From Convolutriloba macropyga (lineage: Eukaryota): a stretch of 64,000 bases of DNA. The notes below the pieces were generated by a model that saw only the letters and a program-made list of their open reading frames with translations, made no database searches and was not told the DNA's origin. Location of the stretch: positions 34,472,001-34,536,000 of the forward strand of contig NC_134468.1 in NCBI RefSeq assembly GCF_964194025.1. The letters are read 5' to 3'. A program made the translations under genes and the position numbers. This document shows positions 2,130 to 32,549 of this stretch, piece by piece. Position 1 is the stretch's first letter; each line of letters opens with the position of its first letter.

Positions 2130-2132
<3 letters not shown>

Positions 2133-2173
<41 letters not shown>
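2133..2173. repeat. (GA)n microsatellite
   Basis: About 20 perfect GA units. Confidence 0.98.
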
Positions 2174-2175
<2 letters not shown>

Positions 2176-9080: not shown

Positions 9081-9081
9081 A

Positions 9082-9790
9082 TTACAAAATCACTAACCGC
9101 TTTTTTATGAATCGGTTGCTTTGTAGTTTATCTCTAAATTTATGAAACTGGTCATTGACTCTAGGTCTACATATTTCTTTGGCCTCGGTAGAGAAGTCTG
9201 TGGCTAATTCTCTCTCATCTTCTTTGCATTTTTCTATTAACTCACTTTCAATAACTTCGAGCACCTCTCTCTGTTCTAGTGTATTGGTTTCTACGTTTTG
9301 TAGTTTATCAATATCATCTTTGCTTGTATACACATAGATAGTTATTCCTGAGTTCTTAAATGTTTGTTCAATTAGAGAAGATATCTCTCTCCAATCCATT
9401 CCGTCTAAACCACAAGCTGTTTTTGGCATCGCTATAAAGCGTAAACTTAGTCCTAGTGCGTGATCTCTCATAGCAAGTAGCGTTGTTTTGATTTTATCAG
9501 TTGTTGGCTTCCCATAAAGAGTAGCCTTAGTGATGAGATTATAAACTAGGTTATTATCTGCTCTGAAAGTTATTATGTCACCTATATCACAGTTCCTACT
9601 TTTACAGTAGTCCTTTAATAAGGGTATTCTTTTGGAGATTGTGTTAGCAAAAGCTTTTTTCATTTCTGCATCTGAGGATATTTTGTGCGCTATAGGCATA
9701 TTAGAATCAAATATAGATTGGGTACGAAAATCTACATATCTAATGCAAGACTTAGTTTGAATTTGCTGTCCTTCAATAAATCCGTCGTTT
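9082..9790 (-). CDS. TARG1/OARD1 (Poa1p-like) macrodomain segment of Pol (domain ~9325-9744)
   Basis: IAHKISSDAEM..A, VYNLITK...KPT, AMRDH, IAMPKTACGLDGMDW and F..SGITIYVY match the human TARG1 motifs (LAHCISEDCRM, YYLITK..KPT, MPRIGCGLDRLQW, ITVY). It is contiguous, via one frameshift, with the RT N-terminus. Confidence 0.92.
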
Positions 9791-11619: not shown

Positions 11620-11825
11620 CCCGGGTTGACAAAAAGTTTTAATCATAGAACTTTCATATTATGGACCATTGACTTCATAAATCAAAAAAGTTTTAAAAGA
11701 TTGGTAAGACTATAACTTTCCCATAAATGAAAGTTCTATGACTAAAACTTTTCCATAAATGGAAGTTTCATGACTACAACTTCTCCATAATATGGAAGTT
11801 TTATGAATACTACTTCTCCATAACA
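11620..11825. repeat. Left TIR plus subterminal quasi-palindromic repeats (AAGTT-TATGACTA-AACTT-like)
   Basis: About 5 degenerate copies, e.g. aaagttctatgactaaaacttt and gaagtttcatgactacaacttc. Confidence 0.85.
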
Positions 11826-12129
11826 ACAGAAAGGAGGCATTTAAAGAGTCTTGGTTTTTTCGTGAGTCCTCATGAGCTTCTTAAACTACAAGGGAAAACA
11901 GTTTTGACTGTTTTTCTTGCAGAATAAGCAAAAATGGAGGCTCTTTTTTTTCCAAGACATGATATATAGCTAAAATCTAAAATCCCGGATAAGCCAGGAA
12001 CATTATAGAACATCATAGAAGAAAGAAACAACGCACAATTAAAATACAGCACATGGGAGAAGGTGCCTGTAAGGGCACAAAGGGATGGACATTTAACAAA
12101 AAATCGGTTTTTTTTTTTAAAAAAAATTT

Positions 12130-15100
12130 TAGCCCCCAAAACTTTAACGAAGACGCCAAACAAAAAAAGCCGGTGCCTTACAATCCTTATGGATAGAAGG
12201 CACTGCCAAAACAGTATGGGTAACATTGAATAACTAATTGACCCAGAAGGTCCCATTATATTTTTTAAATAAAATTGACTTTTTGAGAAACTCTTGACGA
12301 AATTGCAGAACTTGAACTTATACATCAATTATGGGAAATTTTCTTATTCCATAGCCAACGTTAGCCTAATACACGATTGTCATGTCAATTTGAGCAACCA
12401 AAGCCCAGTAGTAAAGAAATGAGAACAATTTTTACATAAAAAACGGTCGAAAAATCTGCGTTTCCGAACTACACACTTTTTTATCTATCAAATTTTAAGC
12501 TTTGACCCAGAAGAAAAATCTCTGGGTGTTTTACCATCCTTATGGATAGGAGGCATCGCCAAAATAGTATGGGTAGTATTGAACAGCTCATTGAGACAAA
12601 AGGTCCTATTATATTTTTTAAATAAAATTGACTTTTTGAGAAACTCTTGACGAAATTGCAGAACTTGAACTTATACATCAATTATGGGAAATTTTCTTAT
12701 TCCATAGCCAACGTTAGCCTAACACACGATTGTCATGTCAATTTGAGCAACCAAAGCCCAGTAGTAAAGAAATGAGAACAATTTTTACATAAAAAACGGT
12801 TGAAAAATCTGCGTTTCCGAACTACACATTTTTTATGTATCAAAAATTAAGCTTTGACCCAGAAGGAAAATCTCTGGGTGTTTTACCATCCTTATGGACA
12901 GGAGGTTTCGCCAAAATAGTATGGGTAGTATTGAACAGCTCATTGAGACAAAAGGTCCTATTATATTTTTTAAATAAGATTGACTTTTTGAGAAACATTT
13001 GGCGAAATCGCAAAACTTGATGTTATATACCACTTCTGGCAAATTTTCTTGATTCATGGCCAATAATAGCCTAACGCATGCTTGTTATTTTTTTTTGGGC
13101 AGCCTAGAACTAGTAGTAGAGAAATGAGTCAAATTTTTACATAAAAAACGATCTAAAAATTAGCGTTTCCGACCTAAACCTGTTTTACGTAACAATTTTT
13201 TAAGCATTGACTGAAAAGAAAAAACTCTGGGTGTTTTACCATCCTTATGGATAGGAGGCACCGCCAAAACAGTATGCGTAGTATTGAACAGCTCATTGAG
13301 CCAAAAGGTCCTATTATATTTTTTAAATAAGATTGACTTTTTGAGAAACATTTGGCGAAATCGCAAAACTTGATGTTATATACCACTTCTGGCAAATTTT
13401 CTGGATTCATGGCCAATAATAGCCTAACGCATGCTTGTTATTTTTTTTTGAGCAGCCTAGAATTAGTAGTAGAGAAATGAGTCAAATTTTTACATAAAAA
13501 ACGATCTAAAAATTAGCGTTTCCGACCTAAACCTGTTTTACGTAACAATTTTTTAAGCATTGACTGAATAGAAAAATCTCTGGGTGTTTTACCATCCTTA
13601 TGGATAGGAGGCACCGCCAAAATAGTATGCGTAGTATTGAACAGCTCATTGGGCCGAAAGGTCCTATTATATTTTTTAAATAAGATTGACTTTTTGAGAA
13701 ACATTTGACGAAATCGCAAAACTTGATGTTATATACCACTTCTGGCAAATTTTCTTGATTCATGGCCAACGTTAGCCTAACGCACGCTTGTTAAATCAAT
13801 TTGAATAGCCTAGACTCAGTAGTAAAGAAATGAGACTACTTTTTACATAAAAAACGTTAGAAAAATTAGCGTTTCCGACCTTCACATGTTTTATGTAAGA
13901 ATTTTTGAAGTATTGACCCAAACGAAAAATCTCGGGTAGTTATAACATCTGTATGGATAGGAGACACTACCAAAACAGTATGGGAAACATAGAACAACTA
14001 ATTGACTCAGCAGCTCCTATTACATTTTTTAAATACGATTGGCTTTTTGGGAAACATTTGACGAAATCGCAAAACTTGACTTTATATATAAATTATGCAA
14101 AATTTTCTTGATTCATGGCCAATGCTAGCCTAAAGCACGCTTGTTATCTCAATTTGAATAGCCTAGATTCAGAAGTAAAGAAATGAGACTAATTTTCACA
14201 TAAAAAACGATCGAAAAATTAGCGTTTCCGACCTACACCTGTTTTGTGTAACAACTTTTTAAGCATTGGCCCAAAACAAAAAAATCGGGTTGCTATAACA
14301 TCCTTATGGATAGGAGGCACTGTCAAAAAAGTATGGGTAACATTGAAGAACTCCTTGAGCCAGAAGGTCCTATCAAATTTATTAAATACGATAGACTTTT
14401 TGAGAAACAATTGACGAAATCGCAAAACTTGATGTTATATATGACTTCTTGAGAATTTTCTCAACTCATGGCCAACGTTAGCCTATTGAACGCTTGTTAT
14501 ATCGCTTTGAGCACCCTCGACTCAGTAGTAAAGAAATGAGACTAATTTTTACATGAAAAACGATCGAAAAATTAGCGTTTCCGACCTACACCGGTTTTGT
14601 GTAACCATTTCTTAAGCAATGGCCCAAAAGAAAAATATCGGATTGTTATAAAATCCTTATGGTTAGGAGGCACTGCCAAAACAGTATGGGTAACATTAAA
14701 CAACTCCTAGAGCCAGAAGGTCCTATTAAACTTTTCAAATACGATTGACGATTTGAGAAACAATTGACGAAATCGCAAAACTTGATGTTATATATCACTT
14801 ATAGGAATTTTTCTTGATTCATAGCCAACCTTAGTCAAACGCACGCTTGTTGTATCGCTTGGAGCAGCCTAGACTTAGTAGTCGAGAAAAAAGAAGGCAT
14901 TTTAAACAGAAAACAGACGATATTTTTGCGTTTCCAAACTTTACATTTGTAATGCAGCATTTTTTCAAGCATTGAAACCTAAGCAAAAACTTTTGGTTTG
15001 ATGCAATCCATATGGATAGGGCATAATACAAAAATAGTATGAGCAACATTCAACAACTCCTTGACCCATGGGGCTACATCAAAATTTTGAAAAACGAGAC

Positions 15101-15740
15101 GACTTTAGAGAAACAATTGACGAAATTGCAAAACTTGACTTTATATAACACTAATCTTGAATTTCCATTTTTTAACATCAAAGCCACCATTAGCCTAACA
15201 CACGTTTCTCTTATCACTTTTAGTTGCCTAAGCCCAATAGTCTAGAAATAAGAAGGCAATTAACATAAAAAACATACGAAATTTTCGCGTTTCCGAACTT
15301 CAACTTTCTATGTACCAATTTTTCAAATATTGAACCAATAGCAAAAGTTTTTGAATTAATACAAACCATATGAATGTGAGACACCACAAAAAGAATAAAA
15401 AGAGTATGAGCAACATTCAACAACTCCTTGGCCCACAGGGTCATCATAATTAAAAAAAGACGAGTTTTGAGAAACATTTGACGAAATTGGAAAACTCAAC
15501 TTTAGATATCACAATTTGCAAAATTCTTCACATCATAGCCAATGATAGCCTAACGAACATTTGTTTTACCTCTTTGAACTGGCTAGAACAAAAAGTCAAG
15601 AACTAAGAAGAAAATTTGAAACAGACAAAAATTATGCGTTTCCGATCTTCACATTTCTAATGTACTACTTTTTGAAGTCTTGACCTCGAATCAAAACTTT
15701 CCAAGTTATTACATTCCATATAGAAAGGAGCCTATATCAA
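12130..15740. repeat. Tandem array, ~353-bp unit, ~10 copies
   Basis: GCGTTTCC(G/A)A anchor at 12461, 12814, 13166, 13519, 13872, 14225, 14578, 14931, 15290 and 15639. Units diverge toward the element interior. Confidence 0.95.
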
Positions 15741-15901
15741 GGTCTACTGAAAGACACAATTAGCTTATTATATTGCCTCAATTAGCACAGACCTAACATT
15801 CTGGTTAAAACAAAAGCTTGTTAAAAAGAAGACAATTCAATTTTTGCAAAAACTTTTCAACTGAAAAAAAATTGAGTTATTTTCGAGTCTCAAAATTGTA
15901 T

Positions 15902-16222
15902 TCAATCGCTCAAAACTTCTACCACTTGTTCGCAGTCCCCACAGATTGACTTTTCAGCATCAACAAAGAACCTGGGGACATAACTTCGACAGACAGAGCA
16001 TAATGCAAAATTGTTGTTGGATAAAATTTCGTCAACATCCTCACGGCAAATAGGGCATGTCGGTCTCTCATTGCACAAGAACTGACTTGAGAAACTTTCG
16101 AGCCACTCTTTAATACAACTCTTGCATCCAACATGCTCAATTAGATAGCTTTTGTGCAAAACAAAAACATTATCTCCCACATCCTCCAAACAGAAGGGGC
16201 AGATGGGGTTACTTGAAGACAT
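15902..16222 (-). CDS. Small RING-finger protein with second Zn-ribbon
   Basis: CPFC..H.GCKSC..W..CPICR RING, then CSVC..CGDC. Intact ORF from MSSSNP. Confidence 0.85.
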   Translation of the reverse strand: MSSSNPICPFCLEDVGDNVFVLHKSYLIEHVGCKSCIKEWLESFSSQFLCNERPTCPICREDVDEILSNNNFALCSVCRSYVPRFFVDAEKSICGDCEQVVEVLSD

Positions 16223-16501
16223 TCTGGCAATCAATGGATTGACAATTCAAACGTCTGAAGAAAAGAAATCATTCCTGTTTAGTAGCAATTAGAATTTTTG
16301 AGTTGCTTTTGAAGAACAGTAGTAACTCTGGGCAAAAAAGCGCAATACAAGCAACAAGAAAACAAAAAGTTCAACAAAAATTTGGATTTAGCAAAGGGAA
16401 AATTGTGATTGAACTTTTAAAAAAAATGTACCAAAAGTTATTCAATCAACACATATTATACAAATCGACAAAAATGTTATAGTTTAAAGTCACATTTGAA
16501 G

Positions 16502-17077
16502 TCAAAAGACTGACTCATCCATTTTTCCACAGTTCGGGCAACAAACTTTTGAATCTTTTACAGCACAGTCATCGCAGATCACATCACAGCATTGAGCGCA
16601 AAATGAGAAACCCATGTCATGCAAAAACCGATCTGAACAACTTCCACAAATAATCGCTATAGCTGGCCTTGGATTATTGGAATTCGCAGCCAGAAAGTGT
16701 CGAACAAAGAGGTACTTCTCCGCAAACTTCTGCCACCAATCATTTCCAGCTCTTTCGTTTTTTGTCCAACTCGGAGGCATCGAGACCCCTGACCTCAGAC
16801 CCATCTTATACGCTGCTTCTTTAACATCTTGCGCAGACTTTGCGTAGAGGACTACGTCGATCAGCAACTTGTTAATCACACTACGCGGAAGTACGCAGGG
16901 CCTTCCTTGCTGTAAGTCAACTTTTGACACGTGGCGTCTTAATGTCGATCTTGGAACACAATGTTTCTTTGCGGCCTTCAGCAACGGAATCCCTTTAGTT
17001 CTTACATCTTTAACAGCGGCGTTTAAATCAGAATTGGAATATTTCTCAGTTGTTTTTCGAATGTATTTTTGAGGCAT
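16502..17077 (-). CDS. Pipsqueak/CENP-B-type HTH protein with C-terminal Cys-rich zinc finger
   Basis: MPQKYIRK..YSNSDLNAAVKDV..LLKAAKKHCVPRSTLRRH (HTH_psq) and AGNDWWQKF (CENP-B/Tc5 HTH end), then CGSC..CAQC..CDDC..CPNC. No DDE domain. Confidence 0.85.
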   Translation of the reverse strand: MPQKYIRKTTEKYSNSDLNAAVKDVRTKGIPLLKAAKKHCVPRSTLRRHVSKVDLQQGRPCVLPRSVINKLLIDVVLYAKSAQDVKEAAYKMGLRSGVSMPPSWTKNERAGNDWWQKFAEKYLFVRHFLAANSNNPRPAIAIICGSCSDRFLHDMGFSFCAQCCDVICDDCAVKDSKVCCPNCGKMDESVF

Positions 17078-17205
17078 TTGACACTGAAGAAACAAAAAAA
17101 AGAAATGAGATTTTACCAAAAAAAAGAAACACTGAAAAGTCAAACATAAAAGCAACAACTTTTTCAATTTCTTCAAACTATGAGTTCAAAATTTTCTACT
17201 AAGAC

Positions 17206-20094
17206 TCAATCATGTTCAAAGATATTCACCAAAGGTACCAAAACAAGTTTTTCATTTACAGTTAATGGCAAGAGCTTTTCAATAATAGCATCCTGACTAA
17301 TAGTCTGTACATTTTCCAATTTTCTGACTTCATAAAAACTGTAAACGTCAGCCGTTGATTGAGAAGGTCTGTGCTTTTTTTCTATTTGGTAGAGCACAAC
17401 AGAAGCAAAATCTTGTTTGTCGATTGTAAAGAACAATCGAATTTGACACAATTTTTTCTCGCCGTCACGGACAAAAGAAACGAACGAGTTTCTGCACGAC
17501 GAATGAGAAATGGAATCAAGGGTAAAATTCTCAAACTTTTGCGTGGAATAAAATTGAGCAGAAAGATCTTTGAGATCAGAGGGGATTTCATGCAAGCAAA
17601 CAGCCCGTTGTTTGAAAGATTTTCTCTCCCTAAGAGACAGACACAAGTCGTATAGCGTGTCTTTTCGAGGATTTTCGCAGCAAGAATTTTTATTCCTTAA
17701 GTATCGGTCCACCAAAACTTTCAGATGACACACTGTCCCAGTGAACTTGCAACGTAGGAGGTAATTTGCCGATTCAAACATGATGGCAGAGGTGCACCAT
17801 AAAGGTCCAAAGCACCTAACCTGCCACGCTAAATGATTGAGAGAATGAATATTCGCAGAAAATACTTTGTCTGAGTGGGCTTCCGCAGTTAGAAGGTGAA
17901 ACCGTTCAATAAGATTTTCAGCCACGCGGCAGTGCTCAGAAGAAAATAAAAGCAAACGGGTGGAATAGCTCAACAAATGTAACCTCTCGTACAAACTTTC
18001 GTTGACGAAACTCCTGAAAACTGCTGGTCCCACATATAAAAGCCAAACTTTCAACTCGTTTGCTTTGAAAAACTCCAATTCATCAAGACTTCGGACCAAT
18101 CTCTTGAAATCAGAAGTCAATTGAAGAGTGGCACTGTTTTCGCGAATTTTGTTGGGATCAGATTTTGTCGATTTATCTCTAATAAGAAACAGAAGAGCAC
18201 GTGTAACACCCAGCAGCACCTGATGCATGTAGTCAACAGGAGCAGTGAGAGGTAGATTTTCGATTAATGTGGACACCGCTGAAGGCCCTTTGACACCTCT
18301 AAAAGAATCCATAGCTTGCTCCTGTATTAAGCGTATATAGGCTTCATGTTGTGCCGCCGTTCGCATCTTGTTCCTCTGGTTAGGATAATATAAACCTTTC
18401 TTGCCTTCTCCTATCGGTTTGCTTTTTATCAAACAGAGCGTACAGCCAAAATAGGCATTGAATTGTTGAATATTAAGTATGGATGCTTTCGCGGGCAAAT
18501 CCGCCACTAATAATTTGATTACAAAATTGACTTCCCAAAGAGTACCGTTCCATTCAATTGACGACTCACTTTGCAGAGTTTCTTTAATTTGGCTAAAAAA
18601 AACATTCCAGTCAGGTTTACCTCGACCGAGCCATAATTTTGCAAGAATAATGTTTGCAAACTTGCATCGTAAAACCGGAGGTAAACTAAGAATACCAAGC
18701 CATAGGGGCAACAATGATCGCTTTTTTCAATTGATAATCCTAACACCATCAGAATTCATTGACAACAAAACTGTTATTTTATTGCTCGAATCAAAAAACG
18801 GCGGGATATTTACATCTTTCAGAGGGCACCGGGAAGAATTGTACTCATATATTGAATTGAGATTCCTCTTAAGAACAAGTAAAATGTCTGATTTAAAATC
18901 TAATGTAATTAACTCGCCTTCACCACATGATAGAGTAGTCTTCAAGGCCAATTTCACGGTCTCATCAGCTTTTCGTTTCATTGACTTTAGCGAGGGAACG
19001 TAGCTTTCGGGAAATGCAGTCCGCATTAGTTTTATCCAATCGGAAGCTTCAGCGTCTGAAGTACCATGGCGGGCAATAATTTCATTCACGCAGATCGCAA
19101 AGTTCTGCTGCGAAAATGTGCAGCTTCGTTCATTAGCAGAATCACGAGCATCTTCTGAGGACGAATCTGAGACATGATCATTGATTGCGCTCAACGTGAA
19201 ACTGGGAGCCATATTTTCTACACTGTTGTTAGGCGAGGACGCAAAATTGTTTATTTGTTGAAAATCAGCCAACGAAGAACTTGTTTCACCAGAAGAGGTA
19301 TCATCCTGTGATAGATCAAAATCTGATGAACTACTGCTCTCCGCAAAGTTGCGCATTTCCAATTTTGGTCTGGGTGATTTCTTGCGACGTTTCGACCGGA
19401 GAACTGATTGTCGTCTTCGCCGGATACGAGAACTGAGCAGAATAAGTCTAGGCCTGGAGTCGCGTTGCCTCTCAGCCAAAGACACTTTAGTCTGATGTCT
19501 ATTGACATGAACACAGAGACAGTCTTGATTCCCTTCTCCGAAGAAATCATTACCATAACTAACTGTTATTTCGTCATTTTTTTCAATAGGGCAAAGTATC
19601 TCCAACTGGATACATCGTCGGGAATTGACTTCTTTCAGATCGAAACGACAGTTAGGTTTACAAGAGTGGTTGGCAAAGCGAGTAGGGCCTCACATGACTC
19701 GATCAAACTTACAGGCGTCCGTCTTTCTGAAAATTGATATGTCTTTGAAGCTCGCCAATGACTCACTTGGAATTTTTTCAATAAATCCAACTATTGATGG
19801 CAGAATTTGTAACGGTCTTGACTTCCTAGTTTGAAAGCTTTTCTCACCTACGTAAAACAAACCATATCCACCAAACCGGTCCCGTTTGAAAGAAAAATTG
19901 TTTGCCAGTGCAGTCTGATAGGCGTCACGTAACAAACCATCGAACTCGAAAAGTGCAAAATTTCTACCCAATGCTTCTCTGTATTCATCTGCCGAAAGTA
20001 TCTGTACCAAAGGTTCAACCGGATGGTTATTAACCTCAATAATTTCTTTAGTGACATGCGCATCAGCCTGCGCAAGGCTAAAGCACTTCAACAT
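17206..20094 (-). pseudogene. SET domain (Suv4-20/KMT5-like) - EnSpm/CMC transposase fusion, ~960 codons, two in-frame TGA stops (19690-92, 18727-29)
   Basis: Three ORFs share one frame. SET motifs: GGYGLF, M*GPTRFANHSCKPNC, EITVSYGNDFFGEGNQDCLC. Transposase motifs: NSDG, LPPVLR, KP, VADLPAKA, QFNAYFGCTLC, GVKG, DYMH..LGV, KANE, NIHSLNHL, GPLW..S...FES. Confidence 0.93.
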
Positions 20095-20364
20095 TTCTTT
20101 AACAAAAGATAATGATATCCATTATTCTATCTAAAAAAGCGCAGCTCACCATATACGAAAAACAATTACACTAGTTCAAAATTCCCGAGTGATAACTGGC
20201 GCATGAAAAAACCAAAATTTTTCACATGCCTATCAAAAACAGCACAGCATTAGTAGTTTGTATTTACTATCATCAGATTTCAACACCGAACTACAAAACG
20301 CAAAGAGAATAGAACAAGCGCAAAATCATTATATAGCAGCTATTACCGTTGAACAGGAAGTACA

Positions 20365-21042
20365 TTAACAAAAAGTTGAACCTCGCTGAAGTTTGAGTTT
20401 AATATCCAAGCCCATTTGATTAGCTGCATGGCGAGCGTCTTTGTATGCTGCTTCCGGGAATTTGGGATATTTTCTTCGCACAACAAGTTCAAACTTTGCA
20501 CGTTCATCTTCAGGCACCGGAGTTCGAATGTCTTTGCGACGCCGATGAGCCCCAATGATGAGTGATTACAGCTTGCATAGCTCGCCCTTACCATACATTG
20601 CGCATCCCAGGTGACGCCCAAACTTGGCAGCACTGCTACCGGCTGGAACTTGCATTAAGTTAATCCCCTCGTGCATGACTGGCAGATAAACAGTCGTATT
20701 GTCGGCAGACGGTAGCTCACCTGTCTTTTGATAAGTCACGAGAGCGAAAAATTCTTCATCATTGGCCCTTTCCTCTTGCCGTAATTTTTTCTAGCTCATT
20801 TTGTGCTCATCAACCATTCTAGAGAGATTACGTTTGAAGGCTTTAAAATCTTCATTTTTAACATTATCTTGATCTTGTTTATTCAAAATTGTACTTTGCA
20901 AATCATTACTGGTTTCAGTTTCGTCATCACTTGATTCCATTTGGTCTTCAGCTTCACTCTCAGATAGAACATTTGAAACAATTTTGGTACGTTTCTTCAA
21001 TACTATTTGATCTTCCTCCGATGAACTTTCACAGCTAGACAT
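20365..21042 (-). pseudogene. BEN-like domain protein paralogue 2 (two in-frame stops)
   Basis: Manual read-through from the 20791 ORF gives an acidic N-terminus, then EGINLMQV..AKFGRHLG..YG..C.L..RTP..F..V.R.Y..AANQMG, which aligns with the C-terminus of ORF 21403. Confidence 0.75.
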
Positions 21043-21402
21043 TTCTAACATGAAAACAAACCAAATTTTTTAAAGTTACCTAAGTGCATTTAGACTGTCA
21101 AACACTGCTTTTTGTAAAAAAGTTCAAACAAACATGTTTGTTCTTTACTGGTTCTCATCTAATTTTATTAAAAAATCAATCGAGCGAAAGGTTGAACTGA
21201 ATTTTGTCAACACAGCTCACGGATGAAACGCATGAAGAAATGATAGACATCAACAACAGTTACAACAATCCATACAAACATCAAAGTTCAGAGGCAAAAC
21301 TAAACACCGAATAGCACCAAATATGCTTTTGCCGAAAAACGGAACGCAAATTAGAAAAATGTAGCTTGCTATAAAGTTGGCGATATGTTTTGGTGATGAC
21401 CA

Positions 21403-23004
21403 TCATAGAGAGTGCTTTTGTTTCATTTCGGCCCCATATTGATTGGCACCTGCAACAGCACGGCTTACGGCTTCGTCAGTATCGTCTGAATAATTTCTAG
21501 TCACACACTCAACAAAAAGCTCTTCAAGAGCTGCATCGCAAGGTCCACGGCTATTTCGCCTGTTGACTTTTACACTAATACGCTCTTTAGCGAGCATACA
21601 GTTCTTCTCACTCCCAAAAATTTCGGCAGCAATTGTTCTGCCAAACACAGACGGCCCATCTTCAGTTGGTTTGAACCTCATCAAGTCCTTTCCGTTAAAC
21701 ATCAAAGGATCGGCGCTGACACGATTGGCTTTGATCGCATTTTTCAACCTTTTCAAGCTATCAGGTTTGTCACCATCTCCCAAAACTTCGAGAAGCTTCT
21801 TTCTAAGAATAGCATTTTCTTTCATTAGTTTTCTAGTGTGCTCCTCCTGAGCGTCCAGCACCTCATTAAACTTGCTTGTCACGAAATCCATTACATCTTT
21901 CATTGAGTATTCTCCTTGAGCTGTGTCCGCATTAGAATTTGGAGCATCATTGCATGGCGTTGAGCAACTTGATTTTGCCAGATTGATATAGGGACTCTCA
22001 TAATCCTTTTCGGCCAACAAGACGTCCTTGGAAAAATGAATGCTCCTCTTAACCGGATTTTGAATTGACTTTCGCTTCTTTTCTTTACTCTCTTTAGGTT
22101 CCTCATTCTCTTTGTCTCTAGGCAGCAATAAAAACCCTCCGTTACTATAGTTACTCTGTACCTTATGTTTTCAAACAGAAAAGATTTATAACAACGAAGC
22201 CTATATCGCTGGATGCATGACAGAAGCAAAAGTCGAGGTTTAGGAAGATTACAAACGAGAACACCAAACAAGCCCAACAGAACGACGTAACTTACTCGAA
22301 TTCTTCTGCTGCTGCTTGTAAAGGCTGAGCTTCATTAATGGTGCAGTTTTGAAGGCTCGTTTCACTGAAGTACAAAAGGAAAAATTTTCTAATGCAAGAG
22401 TTTTGAATAGCAATTAATGTAAACAGGGGCAAAACATGAAAAGTCTTCAATAAAAGCGAAGCAATTACTTAGGCAAGCAGGAATCCAAGCAAAAAGGCAT
22501 AAAATTTGAGCCTCGATTGAATAAATTTATAAAAATTTAATTACCTAGATTTTCAAAGTTAGACTTCTAAGAAACTGGAAATTGTAGGAAAGTGATATTA
22601 ACTCGAAAAGTGTGTACTAACGCTATGGAACTTATATCCGACAGACTTTTGTTTGCGTTAGCAACCTTCGTTGACACATCACGGACGAAACTGTCAACTT
22701 CTTTGACTGACATCATTTTGACAAATGATGCCTTGAATCTACCTGATGACGTTGCTTTGAAGTACAGCTTTCGGCCTCTGACCATGGACAATTTGTCAGC
22801 CAGCGAAATGTCAGGCCAAAACGGACTGTTGTGAGTCAGCACAAAAGGATGGCAATCGTATTTCTTATAGAAGACCCACCGAAGCCCTTTTGCTCTTTTC
22901 TCATCCCCTGGTGAGTTGTACAGAGAGCTTTTAGTTGGAAAATTGCCTTTGGTGGACCTTGGACCAGTTAAGATTAAGTCATTGGCTTTATCCGCAATCG
23001 ACAT
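21403..23004 (-). CDS. Three-exon BEN-like domain protein paralogue 1 (exons 23004-22622, 22364-22296, 22117-21403; 388 aa)
   Basis: GT-AG junctions (GTTAGT/CTTCAG, GTAAGT/CCTAG) keep one open frame of 1167 nt. A coiled coil precedes NGKDLM..PSVFGRTIAAEIFG..L..RGPCD..ANQYG, a BEN-like helical pattern. Extra exons cannot be excluded. Confidence 0.7.
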
Positions 23005-23359
23005 AGTTCTTCTAAAATTTTTGGACCAATTGTTTGCACCGTTGGAGTAAAAATAGAACAAAAAGTAACAAAGTCTGACACGTTTTATCTGTACGGCAAA
23101 AAAACGATACAAAGCTAAGCTCCCCTAAAAACGTTTTGGTTGTAAGAAAACTTAAACCTAAAGCCGACAAAATCAACATTCGCAAAGCCATAAATGTTAA
23201 GATGAAAGTTGTTGAAAACAAATTGGAGGACAATCAGATAGATTCCGAGAAATCGAGTCGAAATTGCCAACAACTGTTTAGAACAAATTTCAGTTTCGAA
23301 AAGATTGTATCTCAGACAATATATCCTTGAATTTATGATAATTTAAGATTAGGAACATC

Positions 23360-24745
23360 GGAAGCTTTTGGGTGAGACTGAATAAAGACTGAAGTATCCA
23401 CCAGCTATTGGGTGGAACCATATTAAATTAAAGATTATGAATTTTAGGTATTTTTTCAGAATCATCCCCCAGCTATCGGGTGGACGAGTGAACCAGTGAC
23501 ATCAAAACAAGCCTTTTTAATGATGTGAGTTTACGAACTCCCCAGCTTTCGGGTGAGACTGAATAAAGATCGAAGTATCCCCCAACTATCGGGTGGAACC
23601 AGATTAAATTAAAGATTATGAATTTTAGGTATTTTTTCAGAATCATCCCCCAACTATCGGGTGGACGAGTGAACCAGTGAAATCAAAACAAGCCTTTTTA
23701 ACGCTGTGAGTTTATGAACTCCCCAGCTTTCAGGTGAGACTGAATAAAGATTGAAGTATCCCCCAACTATCGGGTGGAACCAGATTAAATTAAAGATTAT
23801 GAATTTTAGGTATTTTTTCAGAATCATCCCCCAACTATCGGGTGGACGAGTGAACCAGTTACATCAAAACAAGCCTTTTAATTATGTGAGTTTATGAACT
23901 CCCCAGCTTTCGGGTGAGACTGAATAAAGATCGAAGTATCCCCCAACTATCGGGTGGAACCAGATTAAATTAAAGATTATGAATTTTAGGTATTTTTTCA
24001 GAATCATCCCCCAACTATCGGGTGGACGAGTGAACCAGTGAAATCAAAACAAGCCTTTTTAATGCTGTGAGTTTATGAACTCCCCAGCTTTCAGGTGAGA
24101 CTGAATAAAGATTGAAGTATCCCCCAACTATCGGGTGGAACCAGATTAAATTAAAGATTTTGAATTTTAGGTATTTTTTTTCAGAATCATCCCCCAACTA
24201 TCGGGTGGACGAGTGAACCAGTTACATCAAAACAAGCCTTTTAATTATGTGAGTTTATGATCTCCCCAGCTTTCGGGTGAGACTGAATAAAGATCGAAGT
24301 ATCCCCCAACTATCGGGTGGAACCAGATTAAATTAAAGATTATGAATTTTAGGTATTTTTTCAGAATCATCCCCCAACTATCGGGTGGACGAGTGAACCA
24401 GTGAAATCAAAACAAGCCTTTTTAATGCTGTGAGTTTATGAACTCCCCAGCTTTCAGGTGAGACTGAATAAAGATTGAAGTATCCCCCAACTATCGGGTG
24501 GAACCAGATTAAAGATTATGAATTTTAGGTATTTTTTCAGAATCATCCCCCAACTATCGGGTGGACGAGTGAACCAGTTACATCAAAACAAGCCTTTTTA
24601 ATTATGTGAGTTTATGATCTCCCCAGCTTTCGGGTGAGACTGAATAAAGATTGAAGTATCCCCCAACTATCGGGTGGAACCAGATTAAATTAAAGATTAT
24701 GAATTTCAGTAGGTATTTTTTTTCAGAATCATCCCCCAACTATCA
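23360..24745. repeat. Highly homogeneous tandem array, 181-bp unit, ~7.6 copies, alternating A/B variants
   Basis: GGTGAGACTG at 23371, 23552, 23733, 23913, 24094, 24276, 24457 and 24633. Three CCCCA[A/G]CT[A/T]TC[G/A]GGTG motifs per unit. Confidence 0.97.
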
Positions 24746-24904
24746 TCCCTCAACCGCAAAGATTTAAACATTAGAAACGCTCTCGCAGTGGTTATATTCA
24801 GACACGGTTATTAAGAAGAAAACCAGAAAATAACAAGCTTTTTTTCTCAGACTTGCGAAACAGGGCTCAAAGTTAATATAAACTTGTCCAATTGCAACAA
24901 TAAT

Positions 24905-25450
24905 TTAATTTACATTGGGCAAAGATAAATCAACCAGATCAGGCCTAGCATCAGGAGCACTATCAAACTCCCGAACAAGATCACATCCTGCTTGTTTATA
25001 CCACCAGTCTTTCATGTGTACTGTATCGGGTAGAAAATCTTCATCAAAAGAAAAGGTGCGAAAATGATATTTAAGTTTATTATCGGCAAGTCGGTTGTTG
25101 AGGGCTCTGATGATGTCGAAAACTGCATTTACAGATGACAAGCGATTAATTATCTGCCAAACTATCAATAGAACACCATAGTTATTGCAAAAGTTCCTGA
25201 TCTGAGTGAATTGTCCAATAACACTTCTCATTTCCTCCTTGTATTGTATTGGGTCACTAGGTTTTGCCAGAAGATTGTTACCTCCTAACATCAACATACA
25301 AATATCGTGTTTCTTGATAAGCTCCTTCTTTTGCATCCAGTAATTTACGTGTGCACCTCCTTGTGCCTCGATCGTAAAGTTATCAGGGAACTGGAAAACG
25401 TCGGCAACTCTTTTGAGGTGCGAGTCCCCAATTATTAGTACTTTTGACAT
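24905..25450 (-). CDS. SGNH/GDSL hydrolase (esterase) domain protein
   Basis: Block I VLIIGDSH, block II GG, block III LGGNN, block V DTVH. Intact 181-aa ORF. Confidence 0.9.
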   Translation of the reverse strand: MSKVLIIGDSHLKRVADVFQFPDNFTIEAQGGAHVNYWMQKKELIKKHDICMLMLGGNNLLAKPSDPIQYKEEMRSVIGQFTQIRNFCNNYGVLLIVWQIINRLSSVNAVFDIIRALNNRLADNKLKYHFRTFSFDEDFLPDTVHMKDWWYKQAGCDLVREFDSAPDARPDLVDLSLPNVN

Positions 25451-25799
25451 CGTTATCTGGAAAACAAGACTATTAACTTGAGCTCTTTTTAGCTAGCGTA
25501 CTTATGGTACACACGACTGGATCATTGCATCAAAGCATATTGCGACGACTTTCTAACTCCCTTATGCTAGATGGTTTACAAAACAAGCAACAGATATACA
25601 AAAATACCACACTTCTTTTGACGATTTTTTCTCCTAACCTACCTAATTTATAGCCCTTAGGCGCCACCTCGACCCGTGTGGCTGGGACCTTGTTAAGACC
25701 TAAAAAAATAACATTATTGAGCCTATTCGTGCAGTCAAAGTTGTTAATTTCAACATTTCACATATAGAAACGTGAAACGTACCAGTCACTAACAGGTAA

Positions 25800-27530
25800 A
25801 AATGACCGTATGTGTCTTGGCCAATTTCTCAAAAACGGCTGAAAGAAACAAAACGCTATTTACAGGGATTCAAGTACGGCTCAAGCTGAGTTCAAATCAA
25901 AATACAGATCAAAAATTGGTTCAATCTACGAGGAGATATTCCAACATCAAGGTACCGTACCAAATGACCAAAATGACCCATTTCGGGTCCTGTTTCTGTA
26001 CTATAACATATAACCACTCATTATGACCACCTGTAAAATATATATGGGGAGACTCCCCACTAACGGGGGAATATAACACACTAAATTTCACCGTGGATTG
26101 AACCCACAACAAGGTTTAATATCGTACTCAAGGTGTTGTTTCGCTCCACAGGAGGTCGAATTGGGGTCAACTTTCCTGGCCAATTTCTCAAAAACGGCTG
26201 AACAAAAACAAACGCCCTTAATACTGTTTGTAGCACTGCTTGAGATACGCATCATATTAAAAAATGAGCCCAATCGGTGCACTTTTCAACGAGTTATAGC
26301 AAAAAGAAGGTACCGTACCAAATTATCATGGAGGAGAGATACACCACCTCCAGAGCTAAAATTTGACATGACAATGTGTCAAAAAAATTACAAATAATAG
26401 CTAGAAAGCTTTGCCATAATATAGGGAAGCTAAAGCACCAATAAACAAGCTTTAAATCGATTTCTGACAGATCTTCAAGGTGGTGCCGGATGGTGCCCGA
26501 AATGTACCGGACACGAATTGGTAAAAATGGGGGTATGTGTCCTGGCCAATTTCTCAAAAACGGCTGAACGCAAACAAACGCCCTTAATACCAACTGTAGT
26601 ACTGCTTGGGATACGCATTATATTAAAAAATGAGCCCAATCGGTGCACTCTTCAAGGAGTTATAGCAAAAATAAGGTACCGTACCAAATGATCAAAGAGT
26701 ACAAGTACGGGTCACGTATCCCTAAAATTGACCATCCGAACTAAGGAAAACTACATACAAAATATATATGGGGAGACTCCCCACTAACTGGGGATTCTAA
26801 AACACTAACATTTGTAACATAGTTCAAAGATTCAAGGTGTCAATGGTGTCAACCGGATGGTGTCAACCGCTTCTGGTGCTAAAACCGAGGTCAAGTTTAC
26901 TGGCCAATTTCTCAAAAACGGCTGAACAAAAAAAAACGCCCTTAGTAGAGTTTGTAGCGCGGCTTGAGATACGCATCATATTAAAAAATGAGCCCAATCG
27001 GTGCAGTCTGTAAGAAGTTATAGCAAAAATAAGGTACCCTACCAAATGACGAAAAAGCGAGATGACCTGAATTCAGAGCTAAAATTGAACATTTAAACCT
27101 GAGAAAACGCTATATAAAGTATACATATTCGGAATCTACATTACACGGGCTATTCAGAACACTATATTTGTAACCTGAAGTAACAAAATTCAAAGCTTCA
27201 AAACTGGTTCCGGATGGTGTCATCCGCTTCTGGGGCTAAAACGGAGGGCAAGTTTACTGGCCAATTTCTCAAAAACGGCTGAACGAAACGGAACGAGACC
27301 TATATCAAAACAAAGCTTAGCTCAAGCTGGGTCTAACAAAAAAAATCATCAAAATCGGTTCACTCTACAACGAGTTATTCCAAAGTAAAGGTACCCTACC
27401 AAATGACCCAAAAAGCGAGGTGACCTGATTTCAGAGCCAAATTTGACTATCATAATTCCGTAAAACGCTACGGAAAATATATATGGGGATACTCCCCACT
27501 AACTGAAGATTCTAAAACACTAACATTTAT
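25800..27530. repeat. Diverged tandem array, ~360-bp unit, 5 copies
   Basis: Invariant GGCCAATTTCTCAAAAACGGCTGAA at 25819, 26178, 26544, 26902 and 27259; AAGGTACC[G/C]TACCAAAT in each unit. Confidence 0.92.
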
Positions 27531-28329
27531 TTCGCAAATCAGCTGTTTTGTTGTACCGAAAATTGGGTCATCCAGAACAGCCCAAAAATTCGACTTTTTT
27601 CAACTTTAAGCATTAATAACTTTCTGATAAGACCGATTTGAGAAACCAACCAAATACTGCAAGCAAGCGGGGTTCAGTGCCAACAAAATGCGACCACTCC
27701 CGTTTAATTTGGTCCAGTACTTTAGCAGATATTAACAAAATACTGTTCTGTACCCCATTTTTTGGGCTAAAATCGAAGCCCAAGATCTCCGGAACCGACG
27801 TAAAACAACGTGAAACAGCGTTCCCGGCGTATTTGTGGGTGTAATTCTGGTCCACTTCTACGTTCTAGGTCACGGCAAACCTTCATTGTGAGGTGGGAAA
27901 AAATTTTCCACCTCACCATGAAGCTTATGATGTTTTGTGTGTTTTGACATAAAACAACATCCACAGAAATTTGATGAAATCGTGAAAAAAGAAAAATTGT
28001 TGAATTAACCCCATTATTTGATACAATTAGCTTCAGCAACTTAAACAATGTCTAGAAAACACAAAACGCACGCCGAAAAACTTGTTCAATAGCGCAAAAC
28101 ACCACTCAGCCATAAAATTTGAGAAAAGAGTTTGTTTTTCAGCTTTCATCATTGAATAACTGTTCTAAAGAATTTTTCAAGAATGTGACTAGCCATTCCA
28201 TAGAAGAACGTCTTAACAGCAAAAGATAATGCCAATGATCACTCGTTTTGGTCAAAAACTAATTGAGAAAATCGGAAAAGTACAAAAGATTAAGTTCCTT
28301 TCTCAATGTGATAAAACAAGATCTTTCCT

Positions 28330-28830
28330 CCAACTTTTTGATTAAGACGACGTGAGAAACCTATAAACACTGCAAACAGAAGATTTTAAGATAAACCCAA
28401 ATGCAACAATGCCCGTCCAATTTGGTACAGTAGTTTTAGAGAAATTGTCAAACATAAAAGAACTCGTATTTAAAATAAAAATTTTTTTTTTAAATTTTTT
28501 AAGAATTACAGCTTAATAACCTTCTGAGCAGGCCAATTTAGACACAAATTCAAGACTGCAGACATTTAAACTTACAATCAACAAAATGGGACTATGGTTG
28601 GCCACTTTGGCATAGTAGTTCAGGAAAAATCGTCAGAAACAATAGGCGTGCCCTCAAATCATTAAATTTTATTTCAATTTTTTCAAAGTTAAACACTAAT
28701 AACTTTTTGATTAGGGCGACTTCAGGAACCAATGAACACTGCAAGCAATGAAAGTTTAGGGTAAGCAAAACGCAACAATGCCTGTACAATTTGGTACAGT
28801 AGTTTCGAAGAAATCATAAAACACATGAAG
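28330..28830. repeat. Decayed ~185-bp tandem repeat (3 copies; related copy at ~27612)
   Basis: AAC[T/C]TT[T/C]TGA..ACTGCA..CAACAA..TTTGG anchors at ~28332, 28518 and 28701. Confidence 0.7.
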
Positions 28831-29534
28831 CGTACCCCGAATTGATAATTGATTTTTTTTTCAAATTTGGACATTAATTTTTCTGTAAAGATCTTCACAT
28901 GTGTTTTTAACAGTTAATTAGATGAATGGTTAGGCGAGTTGCACACCCCAGCGTGTAAATTTAATTGGATGGCCACTTTTAAAATCAACAGAAGGATAGA
29001 AACTATTTGCAAGGAAAAAAATTTACATAAAATTTCCGAATTTCATAATGAGAATAATTGATGAAAATCCAAAGTAAGGAAACGAAACATTTTTTTTTGC
29101 TTTTTGAAATTGAATAAAGTTTTTTCCTCAGCCTAAGAGACAAAAATCCGTTTTTCCTATTTTTTTCTTAAACTAGTGTACTTAGATCGTTTTACTTGGA
29201 GATCATGACGACCACTTTGAATCCGTAGTAGAGAAAAAATTATTACAGAATTAAAAAAAGATCTACTTTTTTCAATTGTTGGGGAACCGTTCTCGTACAA
29301 AATCATTTGAAATAGATTCCGAAAAAACCCTCAGATGTATTCCTGAATGTTTACTGGATGTGATTTGAGGAGAGGCAGTTAACAATGTTTTTAATTTAAA
29401 TTAGGGTACTTTTCTTACATCGACACAACTGTCAGACCACTTGAAGTCAAACGTAAAAAAAAACAAATAAGAAGTTCCAAAGCTCTTCGTGGTAAAAATT
29501 GATCAAACAGCCCATTTTTGAACTAAAATCCAAA

Positions 29535-32030
29535 TTGTAGATTGGGGTACCACCCCCGTTGATGGTTGTTTATTTGCGCGAGACGCTCTGAGTTGATTAA
29601 AAACAAAAACTTGCCTGATATATATTTTTTTGCAATTGTGAAGTCGAACGAAATTGATATCAGCTGAAAACACAAATTGTGCTTCAAAGAAATCTTGCTC
29701 CTCAAGACATTTTTTTAGCAATAGCAATTGGTCATTTCAAGAAGTAATTAGCTACATTAACCAATATTTTGGGTGTCCGATTTACCCCAAAAAATTTTTT
29801 TGGGTGGAAACTTATTCTATATTCTATCGAGTTTTCATTTTCCCATAATTTTTTGTGCTATGGGCTTGTTGTACACTCCTGAAAATGAACCCGAGTGTAG
29901 GATCGCAAGTAAAGCGTTTTTGATAGTGACAAAATATAAGTAATCTTATATGGATGAATTTTGTAAGCAAAATTATTGAGATGGGATGGTTCAATTCTCG
30001 ATGAGGTACAATTTTGCTTGATAACAGCTGCAAAACAAAAATGTGCGTCAAAGAAATTTGGTTCCTCGAAACAACTCATTGGCAATATCAATTGGTCATT
30101 TCAAAAAAGAAGTAGCTACATTAACCAATATTTTGGGTGCCTGATTTACCCCAAAAATTTTTTTGGGTGGAAACTTACTCTATATTCTATCGAGTTTTCA
30201 TTTTCCCATAATTTTTTTGTGCTATGGGAGAGTTGTACACTCCTGAAGATGAACCCGAGTGGAGGATCGCAAGTAAAGCGTTTTTGATAGTGACAAAAAA
30301 TAAAAAATCTTATATGGATGAATTTTGTAAGCAAAATTATTGAGATGGGGTGGTTCAATTCTCGATGAGGTACAATTTTGCTTGATAACAGCTGCAAAAC
30401 AAAAATGTGCATCGAACAATTTAAGTTCCTCGAAACAACTCATTGGCAATATCAATTGGTCATTTCAAAAAAGAAGTAGCTACATTAACCAATATTTTGG
30501 GTGTCGGATTTACCCAAAAAAAATTTTTTGGGTGGAAACTTATTCTATATTCTATCGAGTTTTCATTTTCCCATAATTTTTTTGTGATATGGGCTAGTTG
30601 TACACTACTGATGATGAACCCGAGTGGAGGATCGCAAGTAAAGCGTTTTTGATAGTGACAAAAAATAAATAATCTTATATGGATGAATTTTGTAAGCAAA
30701 GTTATTGAGATGGGGTGGTTCAATTCTCGATGAGGTACAATTTTGCTTGATAACAGCTGCAAAACAGAAATGTGCATCGAAGAATTTAAGTTTCTCGAAA
30801 CAACTCATTGGCAATATCAATTGGTCATTTCAAAAAGGAATTAGCTACATTAACCAAAATTTTGGGTGTCCGATATACATCAAAAATTCTTATTGGGAGG
30901 TAACTTATTCTATATTATATCAAGTTTTCATTGTCCCATAATTTTTTTGTGATATGGGCTAGTTTTACACTCCTGGAGATGAACCTGAGTGGAAGATCAC
31001 AACTAAAGTATTTTTGATATTGACAAAAAATAAATAATCTTATATGGATGAATTTTGTAAGCAAAATTATTGAGATGGGGTGGTTCAATTCTCGATGAGG
31101 TACAATTTTGCTTGATAACAGCTGCAAAACAGAAATGTGCATCGAAGAATTTAAGTTCCTCGAAACAACTCATTGGCAATATCAATTGGTCATTTCAAAA
31201 AGGAATTAGCTACATTATCCAAAATTTTGGGTGTCCGATATACATCAAAAATTCTTATTGGGAGGTAACTTATTCTATATTCTATCGAGTTTTCATTTTC
31301 CCATAATTTTTTGTGATATGGGCTAGTTGTACACTACTGAAGATGAACCCGAGTGGATGATCGCAAGTAAAGCGTTTTTGATAGTGACAAAAAATAAATA
31401 ATCTTATATGGATGAATTTTGTAAGCAAAATTATTGAGATGGGGTGGTTCAATTCTCGATGAGGTACAATTTTGCGTGATAACAGCTGCAAAACAAAAAT
31501 GTGCATCGAAGAATTTAAATTCCTCGAAACAACTCATTGGCAATATCAATTGGTCATTTCAAAAAGGAATTAGCTACATTAAACTAAAATTTTGGGTGTC
31601 CGATATACATCAAAAATTCTTATTGGGAGGTAACTTATTCTATATTATATCAAGTTTTCATTGTCGCATAATTTTTTCTAGGCTATGGGCTAATTGTACA
31701 CTCCTGGAGATGAACCTGAGTGGAAGATCACAACTAAAGCATTTTTGATATTGACAAAAAATAAATAATCTTATATGGATGAGTTTTGTAAGCAAAATTA
31801 TTGAGATGGGGTGGTTCAATTCTCGATGAGGTAAAACTTTGTTTGATATCAGCTGAAAAACACAAACTGCGCTTCAAAAAGTTTGGTTTCTCGAAACAAC
31901 TCGTTGGCAATATCAATTGGTCATTTCAAAAAGGAATTAGCTACATTAACCAAAATTTTGGGTGTCCGATTTACCCCAAAATTTTTTTGGAAAAACACTG
32001 GAACCATGTTCTATCGAATTTTCTTTGTCC
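29535..32030. repeat. Tandem array, ~365-bp unit, ~7 copies
   Basis: GATC[G/A]CAA anchor at 29901, 30265, 30630, 30995, 31359 and 31726. The repeated pseudo-ORFs in the track mirror this period. Confidence 0.96.
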
Positions 32031-32139
32031 CATACTTTTTTGCTATACGCTGGTCTGTTTTGCGCCAAAAATTTGAATGGCAAGATGACATTTCTTCGTA
32101 AGGAAGAAATTAGTTCTTTTACGGAAAAAATTGAACCAA

Positions 32140-32549
32140 AACTTTTCTATGAAGTTCTATGACTACAACTTTTTCATTGTTGATTGTAATTTGCAGTCTC
32201 ATTTGATGCAATGGGTTTTCATTGAATAATTAAGGGCGGGCAAGGAGTTTTTTAACTTGCAAAAGTGTTTTTCACTTTTCTCCAAAATTTTTTCTTTTTC
32301 TATGAAGTTCTATGACTACAACTTTTTCATAATTCTCTGTTCGCTTAAGACTCAATTTTTCAATTTTTTTTCAAGTTAGTTTTTTGAAACATACTATTTC
32401 CCTCCTTTTCATGATGTAAAAAAAATTTTCATAAAAATTCAATTCCATAGAACTCCTTTTTATGAAAGTTCTATGACTACAACTTTTCATAGACGCCATA
32501 ATATGAAGTTGTAATATTATAACTTTTTGAATTATGGGGTCAACCCGGG
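32140..32549. repeat. Right subterminal repeats plus TIR
   Basis: AAGTTCTATGACTACAACTTTT three times (~32152, 32305, 32466), the same motif as the left end, then GTCAACCCGGG. Confidence 0.88.

Follow-up and report, generated by a model that had tools for sequence, protein, structure and literature searches.

A decayed multi-gene CMC transposon of Convolutriloba macropyga with a SET-transposase fusion, predicted BEN-domain genes and tandem arrays

Transposons that carry epigenetic enzymes are known in plants (VANDAL), fungi (TET/JBP), oomycetes (SET in Harbinger and MuDR elements), and red algae (Plavaka). Here we describe an element in a 64,000-nucleotide stretch of the Convolutriloba macropyga genome (assembly GCF_964194025.1, contig NC_134468.1, positions 34,472,001 to 34,536,000 of the forward strand), hereafter called the window, in whose numbering coordinates are given unless a related locus is named. 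Positions 11620-32549 are occupied by a single 20,930-bp transposon of the CMC superfamily, the ends of which carry the 11-bp terminal inverted repeat (TIR) CCCGGGTTGAC. We are highly confident that the element, now decayed, is a copy of an autonomous multi-gene CMC transposon. The proposal that such an element may program its own chromatin is more tentative and falls somewhat short of even odds; as the best explanation of the locus, the two taken as a whole receive a probability of about 0.5. What appears to be new is an animal-type CMC family with a predicted methyltransferase within the transposase polypeptide, together with putative dedicated BEN-type DNA binders and conserved satellites.

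Among the closest described systems is the giant Plavaka element (EnSpm/CACTA) of the red alga Bostrychia moritziana, 17-19 kb in length, the accessory genes of which (PAG1-3) encode a SET domain with a DNA methylase as well as a 2-oxoglutarate (2OG) oxygenase with a DNA-binding domain, proposed to target the element's own subterminal repeats (bioRxiv 10.1101/2025.02.11.637652). The present element shares with Plavaka its transposase superfamily, a similar size, and several conserved accessory genes, including a SET and a DNA-binding modifier. However, the SET domain of Plavaka lies in a separate gene with the DNA methylase, whereas here it is KMT5-like and fused to the transposase, and it is accompanied by BEN proteins, an SGNH hydrolase, and satellite arrays of kilobase length, in what looks like an animal host. 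In Ectocarpus, too, giant elements of the EnSpm, KDZ, and Sola types carry accessory genes (PMC12477816). HarbingerS elements and the MuDR elements of oomycetes are described as encoding SET, fungal KDZ/EnSpm elements as encoding TET/JBP, and VANDAL elements as using anti-silencing (PMC12730594). These are likewise DNA transposons carrying epigenetic writers, erasers, or anti-silencing factors, but they belong to other superfamilies or use other enzymes, and as described in these papers none combines a transposase-fused SET with BEN genes, SGNH, and arrays. Family-specific motif arrays next to the BEN genes offer a circumstantial parallel to VANC of VANDAL elements, to which there is no homology.

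The element also resembles maize En/Spm in its CMC-type transposase, its subterminal motifs at both ends, and a second element-encoded DNA-binding function. In En/Spm, TnpA also governs the epigenetic state of the element. Unlike En/Spm, the termini here read CCCGGG... rather than CACTA and the target-site duplication (TSD) is 2 bp rather than 3 bp, so that of the CMC/EnSpm label given in the initial annotation the CMC membership stands and a strict En/Spm assignment does not. The genes are, moreover, separate transcription units rather than alternative splice forms, and the SET is fused. No TnpA homologue appeared among the annotations of the open reading frames (ORFs), where no dedicated search for one was made. 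A homologous transposase is found in the Mirage/Chapaev elements of animals (DUF1258, Transposase_21). Mirage is reported to have a 2-bp duplication. To our knowledge, Mirage/Chapaev elements are small single-gene elements without SET, BEN genes, or arrays.

A SET domain N-terminal to a DDE transposase is otherwise familiar from the primate fusion SETMAR, described as a domesticated, immobile host gene in which a Tc1/mariner transposase was exon-captured downstream of an unrelated SET gene (PMC9062482). Both proteins place a lysine-methyltransferase SET before a DDE transposase, but the fusion described here serves a mobile CMC family as its working transposase, and its SET is of SUV420H type; the family is an independent, still-mobile counterpart of the SETMAR domain arrangement. 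Small SGNH hydrolases likewise recur in mobile elements, as esterases encoded by ORF1p of CR1/L2-type non-LTR retrotransposons and by bdelloid LTR retrotransposons (PMC3905857, PMC5408684). There the esterase lies in or next to a gag-like ORF1, whereas in the present DNA transposon it has a gene to itself, and a sequence-level link between the two was not found. Searches of full-text literature turned up neither a CMC transposase joined to a SUV4-20-type SET nor BEN genes serving as accessory genes of a transposon. The suggestion that this gene set lacks a described precedent thus applies to the exact combination, which was not found in the literature searched, and not to the concept, as Plavaka, HarbingerS, and MuDR elements carry SET.

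The element is a real, bounded mobile unit because other copies stop at exactly the same bases and carry 2-bp duplications of their own. In the window, TA is followed by CCCGGGTTGAC at the left junction, and GTCAACCCGGG is followed by TA at the right. Among relatives in the public assembly ENA ERZ25071359 (loci L001-L008), one sister insertion extends from L005:919 to L001:18300 (23,075 bp, TA/TA duplication) and another spans L002:185-19971 (19,787 bp, TG/TG duplication); both have termini exactly as in the window, and their flanking DNA is unrelated. Since the L002 insertion carries TG/TG, the duplication is 2 bp but not strictly TA. The three insertions bear out the single bounded CMC transposon recognized in the initial annotation, while its TA must be given up as a fixed duplication. 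The terminal 10-mer occurs at just two sites in the window, namely the element ends, and by itself the pair is within chance, with about one match expected when up to one mismatch is allowed. An 11-mer subterminal motif, AAGTTCTATGA, has six copies in the element, all of them no further than about 200 bp from the left end or about 400 bp from the right, and eight matches across the window against 2.5 expected. No empty-site version of the target was found among the sequences compared.

Two further observations concern the DNA flanking the insertion. The sequence AAGTAGCGT(T)CAA is found on both flanks (11579-11590 and 32551-32563), perhaps by chance or as a repeated target sequence. A C-run/G-run inverted repeat with 43-nt arms that are 74% complementary lies about 60 bp to the right of the insertion (32612-32718).

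The features of the element are as follows (HTH, helix-turn-helix):

11618-11630, plus strand: left TSD TA (11618-11619) and 11-bp TIR CCCGGGTTGAC (11620-11630), a terminus common to L001, L002, and L003
11631-11823, no strand: left subterminal repeats, with AAGTTCTATGA at 11643, 11731, and 11796 and a 32-bp array at 11708-11823
12172-15730, no strand: array A, 353-bp unit, about 10 units, the inner ones degenerate
15902-16222, minus strand: RING-like zinc-finger ORF, 106 aa from ATG, then a CxxC...CxxC ribbon
16502-17077, minus strand: psq-HTH protein, 191 aa, with psq HTH, putative second HTH, and C-terminal Cys-rich finger
17206-20094, minus strand: SET-transposase, single exon, 962 codons, with SET at about residues 90-200, linker, and CMC DDE transposase (D449, D532, E774)
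20365-21051, minus strand: BEN2, 228 codons, with acidic N-terminus, coiled coil, and predicted BEN domain
21403-22117, minus strand: BEN1 exon 2, with basic linker, coiled coil (model residues 76-115), and predicted BEN domain (about 140-241)
22118-22621, minus strand: BEN1 intron, 504 nt, GTTAGT...CCTAG, phase 2, with conserved splice sites
22622-23004, minus strand: BEN1 exon 1, small alpha/beta N-terminal domain
23363-24744, no strand: array B, 181/363-bp unit, between SGNH and BEN1, with 18 same-orientation copies of CACCCGATAGTTGGG (gene strand)
24905-25450, minus strand: SGNH/GDSL-type hydrolase ORF, 181 aa, intact, with GDSH, GGN, and DxxH blocks
25774-27528, no strand: array C, degenerate unit of about 362 bp, non-coding, 68-72% identical between units and 75-78% identical to L004
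28332-28868, no strand: 369-bp repeat, about 1.5 units
29654-32041, no strand: array D, 365-bp unit, 6.5 units
32152-32487, no strand: right subterminal repeats, with AAGTTCTATGA at 32152, 32305, and 32466
32539-32551, minus strand: right TIR (32539-32549, reverse complement of CCCGGGTTGAC) and TSD TA (32550-32551)

The central gene is a fusion. A single 962-codon frame, broken by two stops, runs through the ORFs at 19690-20094, 18727-19605, and 17206-18714, and an intact 962-aa protein, P0182, is encoded by copy L008 (98.3% identical in this gene). Relative to P0182, the window has TTA changed to TGA at codon 135 (19690-19692) and TCA changed to TGA at codon 456 (18727-18729), and no indels. 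The C-terminal 730 residues are a CMC transposase with 94 homologues. By itself the window transposase ORF scores below the Pfam threshold; its intact relative P0012 matches PF02992 (Transposase_21; E 1.6e-7, 31.2 bits versus a cutoff of 28.6) and PF06869 (DUF1258; E 3.9e-10), and the relative P0003 matches PF06869 (E 6.8e-9). D532 and E774 do not vary among 11 sequences that are as little as 21% identical, nor do the CxxC and H residues, and D449 is nearly invariant; the codons of the DDE triad are retained in the window copy despite the two interrupting stops. The closest named relatives come from a rotifer, oysters, a hydrozoan, and ticks, which, taken with the GT-AG intron of BEN1 described below, points to an animal host, and the element sits nearest the Mirage/DUF1258-type animal branch of the CMC superfamily. 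Other animal CMC transposases among the homologues are mostly without SET.

The SET portion comprises the N-terminal ~200 residues of this frame. Its best solved relatives (phmmer, P0003:1-230) are SUV420H2 (E 5.5e-13) and SUV420H1/KMT5B (E 1.7e-10), the next SET family, NSD/ASH1L, being seven orders of magnitude weaker (E 2e-5). The NHxC motif, the catalytic Tyr, and the post-SET FFGE..C.C motif align with SUV420H, are present in the window frame too, and are retained in family members 33-66% identical. Fusions are found in lineages with SET parts 37-67% and transposases 43-70% identical to those of the window. The initial annotation had recognized the SET domain and listed it as a cargo gene; its identity stands on these matches, but it is a transposase domain and not cargo, because both parts share one 962-codon frame and the fusion is kept across diverged lineages. 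We regard it as a predicted SUV4-20/KMT5-type methyltransferase with predicted H4K20 activity. A word-limited search for SET-transposase fusions beyond this assembly returned only members from ENA ERZ25071359, which is no proof of their absence elsewhere.

Upstream of the SET-transposase we identified two genes with predicted BEN domains, the first of which is split by an intron. The ORF at 21403-22128 lacks an in-frame ATG upstream of residue 77, yet the residues preceding that point are conserved between families, and conservation in the upstream ORF (22567-23112) ends right after the peptide SDISSIA. In all three families SDISSIA is followed by GC and then, across the junction, GT(T/A)AGT, and just ahead of the conserved DKEN of the downstream ORF a pyrimidine-rich stretch runs up to an AG. 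The two junctions share phase 2, and the GT-AG intron is conserved in the three families. The predicted spliced products are uninterrupted (365 aa in the window, 385 aa in L002, and 352 aa in L004) and colinear, gapless at the junction, with an intron-less 378-aa ORF of L003, the most distant family. The conserved splice sites, their phase, and the colinear intron-less L003 ORF indicate that the ORFs labelled BENa and BENb are one two-exon gene, BEN1.

In an AlphaFold (AF2) model of BEN1 exon 2, built from a 24-sequence alignment, a basic region is disordered, a long helix forms a coiled coil, and the C-terminus folds into a helical domain, with a predicted local distance difference test (pLDDT) of 84-95 over most of residues 140-240 and of 76 in one 10-residue block. 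With VIA-align, 85-101 residues of this domain match 11 BEN-DNA structures (BEND3, Bsg25A, BEND6, BANP, Insv, and NACC1) at Z 6.6-8.2, after which the score drops to Z 4.7 for the first unrelated structure, and the top three Foldseek matches of the model are BEN domains, with weak E values. A feature search of the ESM Atlas gave BEN/DUF4806 at just 0.87, and PDB chains searched with sequence profiles of BEN1 and of exon 1 yielded no matches. On the modelled structure, the BEN1 C-terminal domain is predicted to have a BEN fold. BEN2 is paralogous to the second exon of BEN1 (hhalign 99.8%, E 1.5e-29); it is interrupted by in-frame stops in the window (20791-20793 and 20566-20568) and intact in L001, L002, L004, and L008. 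Of the two BEN-like ORFs in the initial annotation, one thus keeps its BEN identity on the strength of the fold and the other proves to be the N-terminal exon of the same gene, while the true second BEN gene (20365-21051) was probably missed. In a search of 5.8 billion proteins, BEN1 and BEN2 homologues were confined to this assembly, and the loci fetched (L001-L004 and L006-L008) lie inside such elements.

Exon 1 of BEN1 is confidently predicted as a small alpha/beta fold. Compared with the PDB, its model gave nothing above noise, the best matches being the JMJD2C Tudor domain (Z 4.7) and the GreA C-terminal domain (Foldseek E 0.04). A role for exon 1 as a Tudor reader of H4K20me is unsupported, because the JMJD2C match is within noise. 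In AlphaFold DB, exon 1 matches about 90 residues at the N-terminus both of proteins annotated as BEN domain-containing and of unnamed ones, which we take to be invertebrate from their accessions. Pfam assigned no family to 42 exon-1 family members, nor to any of 48 cluster representatives in a library of 1.84 billion proteins. The exon-1 profile also matches ten stretches of P0148, a 2027-aa SUEL-lectin repeat protein of Dimorphilus gyrociliatus (CAD5120030.1; E 2.4e-8), probably spuriously.

Among the remaining genes, the SGNH hydrolase and the psq-HTH protein were correctly identified in the initial annotation. In six sequences with identity as low as 23%, the GGN and DxxH blocks of the hydrolase do not vary, and GDSH is present in all five that have the N-terminus. 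Its top ESM Atlas matches (0.95) are GDSL clusters; Lipase_GDSL_2 of Pfam scores 21 bits, below the cutoff of 32.9, and the profile has no match among PDB sequences. The psq protein scores above the gathering cutoff for HTH_psq (PF05225; 28 bits versus 20.4, E 1.7e-6), as does a relative in L003; it is limited to the window's subfamily, the L003 relative (23% identical) lying at another position. The RING-like ORF is present in the window's subfamily and in L002 and absent from L004. Its CxxC...H..C..C...CxxC pattern is kept between the window and L002, with the third Cys replaced by E or P; Pfam matches (E 8e-4 to 3e-3) are under the cutoffs, and the best PDB match is RNF4 (E 0.03). The RING assignment therefore survives as a RING-like pattern and not as a full RING, since the third zinc ligand is missing and Pfam is sub-threshold. 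As parts of a family toolkit, psq and RING belong to the window's subfamily but are lineage-specific rather than general.

Tandem repeats make up about 46% of the element, and they differ in how they are conserved. The consensus of array A is exactly 353 bp and 89-90% identical among the families of the window, L002 (L002:14095-19420), and L004 (L004:13764-17705), the coding DNA of which is just 66-72% identical and thus less conserved than array A. Over 40 units from four copies, per-column conservation averages 87% and is spread over the whole unit, and no other DNA of the element is as well conserved as array A and the terminal 4 kb. A structured RNA was rejected for array A (z-scores of -0.6 and +0.8), as was a coding function, the unit length being no multiple of 3 and amino-acid identity lower than DNA identity. 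Its conservation reflects either selection on the entire unit or transfer of the terminal module from one family to another.

In every family array B separates SGNH from BEN1; its period is 181/363 bp in the window, 149/299 bp in L002, and 177/362 bp in L004. The motif CACCCGATAGTTGGG is present in 10-18 same-orientation copies in array B of the window's subfamily and of L002; in its place, array B of L004 (L004:4396-6069) has another repeated motif with CAGCTG and an inverted repeat. Such replacement of the motif would fit a binder and its site changing together. L002 is without arrays C and D and has an unrelated array of 713-bp period (~1140-3930, about four units, 86-92% identical), which exceeds the period limit of Tandem Repeats Finder (TRF). 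L003 has 180-bp and 168/340-bp arrays. That arrays unrelated in sequence have periods near multiples of ~180 bp is suggestive of nucleosome spacing.

All ORFs of the element are on the minus strand, in agreement with the initial annotation. The order and strand of SGNH, BEN1, BEN2, SET-transposase, optional psq and RING, and the 353-bp array are shared by L001, L002, L004, L006, L007, and L008 (tblastn), and this gene order and array are kept in families with transposases 58-67% identical. L003, a 43% family, has the same kinds of genes with extra BEN copies and is without the 353-bp array. Between the window and L002 or L004, identity is 70% for SGNH, 57-67% for BEN1, about 63% for BEN2, 50% for RING, and 58-70% for the SET-transposase, the accessory proteins thus being conserved to the same degree as the transposase, with non-synonymous divergence (dN) of 0.22-0.41 and synonymous sites saturated or synonymous divergence (dS) above 1.7. 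No internal TIR pairs were found in a search within the element. Given the shared order, dN far below saturated dS, and the lack of internal TIR pairs, neutral cargo and nested insertions are ruled out for the core genes, so that the earlier view of the cargo as present in other copies, non-nested, and non-neutral holds for them. The core genes are under purifying selection between families, and the core module has come down by vertical descent in the three families nearest to that of the window, the psq-HTH and RING-like genes having been added in some lineages.

The copy in the window is not intact, with four premature stops, two in the SET-transposase and two in BEN2. In L008 (ena:ERZ25071359:ctg37994_55x_l, 435933-458821), all seven ORFs are uninterrupted, which makes it a candidate active master element and opens direct experiments. 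At least 37 members fall in a 90% cluster, and copies are 98% identical. The window element is a recently inserted, now broken copy, predicted to be unable to make transposase or BEN2 and capable of moving only with proteins from intact sisters such as L008.

We hypothesize that the coiled-coil BEN proteins, joined by psq where present, would bind as oligomers to family-specific motifs in the internal and subterminal arrays, and that the bound arrays would make about 10 kb of the element a nucleoprotein platform. It would serve to bring in or place the SET-transposase, perhaps along with the RING-like protein and the hydrolase, such that the element may write its own local chromatin (H4K20-type methylation) and thereby control its own transcription and excision. 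The outcome might be self-regulation or shielding from host silencing, as with En/Spm TnpA and VANDAL VANC acting on their own repeats. The best indirect support for the view that BEN and psq proteins bind the element's own repeats and, with the SET-transposase, set its chromatin or assemble its transposition complex comes from array A, which is conserved beyond synonymous sites, and from array B, in which the motif turns over. A more specific version, in which BEN paralogues read family-specific motifs at nucleosome-repeat spacing and position the SET-transposase and H4K20 methylation over the element, with binder and motif co-changing, is unlikely. If it held, one mobile element would carry the writer together with the DNA platform that sets the place of writing. 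The family is a compact natural system for studying transposon versus host chromatin, BEN recognition, and nucleosome-sized satellite periods.

Several points weigh against this proposal. BEN1 and BEN2 from the window, L002, and L003 do not match the Pfam BEN family (PF10523), and the BEN assignment rests on a predicted fold with middling Z scores. The conservation of array A could reflect terminal-module exchange rather than protein binding, and a period of ~180 bp is common in satellites generally. The SET substrate could be non-histone, or SET could serve only as a nucleosome tether. Among copies 92-98% identical, dN/dS ranges from 0.1 to above 1 and is lowest in comparisons with the intact L008; because subfamily values are this noisy, as in dead copies, recent selection on each accessory gene is not demonstrated. 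Finally, the family was seen in one assembly only.

The accessory proteins could instead be mechanical co-factors of transposition, with BEN1, BEN2, and psq binding the repeats to pair the ends of a 20-kb element in the manner of TnpA, and SET acting at the break or the target, either through H4K20 methylation that steers double-strand break repair or through H4-tail binding for target choice. Plant CACTA elements do need a second DNA-binding protein (TnpA in addition to TnpD in En/Spm), arrays A and D lie just inside both ends, the most conserved DNA is that of array A and the terminal 4 kb, and SET is covalently joined to the enzyme that makes the break. However, most other animal CMC transposases among the homologues lack SET and no BEN partner is recorded for them here, which argues that these parts are not generally required; array B is internal and adjoins BEN1, more like a regulatory region, and L002 does without arrays C and D and has the unrelated 713-bp array instead. 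We consider such a purely mechanical role possible, though doubtful.

Chromatin self-programming could also be turned to the host's benefit, as self-limiting silencing in which the element would place H4K20me3-type heterochromatin on its own arrays and so hold down both its copy number and the rate of ectopic recombination. The H4K20me2/3 made by SUV4-20 enzymes is a repressive mark found on repeats, most BEN proteins, Insensitive and BEND3 among them, act as repressors, and most copies observed are broken, but the 90% cluster of at least 37 members and the 98% identical copies indicate recent successful spread. We consider self-limitation improbable. That the genes are host genes captured and carried passively (Pack-type), or a composite of nested insertions without function for the element, is least probable by far and largely refuted for the core genes. 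The lineage restriction of psq-HTH and RING-like genes does attest to gene gain or loss, and the psq and HTH layout presumably resembles the DNA-binding end of pogo/Tigger transposases, but SGNH, BEN1, BEN2, and SET-transposase keep order and strand despite saturated dS, no internal TIR pairs were found, BEN1 and BEN2 homologues occur only in this assembly with the fetched loci in such elements, and L008 has all seven ORFs intact.

Outside the element, Gypsy-type pol remnants (RNase H and integrase zinc domain; 5170-9807, minus strand) lie directly to the left of the insertion and include a weak match to a Macro domain (9082-9807; Pfam E 0.003). Neither an Rfam family nor a clear host gene informative about the host was recognized in the window. 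An ORF at 107-817 (minus strand) with a weak match to TMEM234 (E 1.3e-4) is the sole hint of a host gene in the window.

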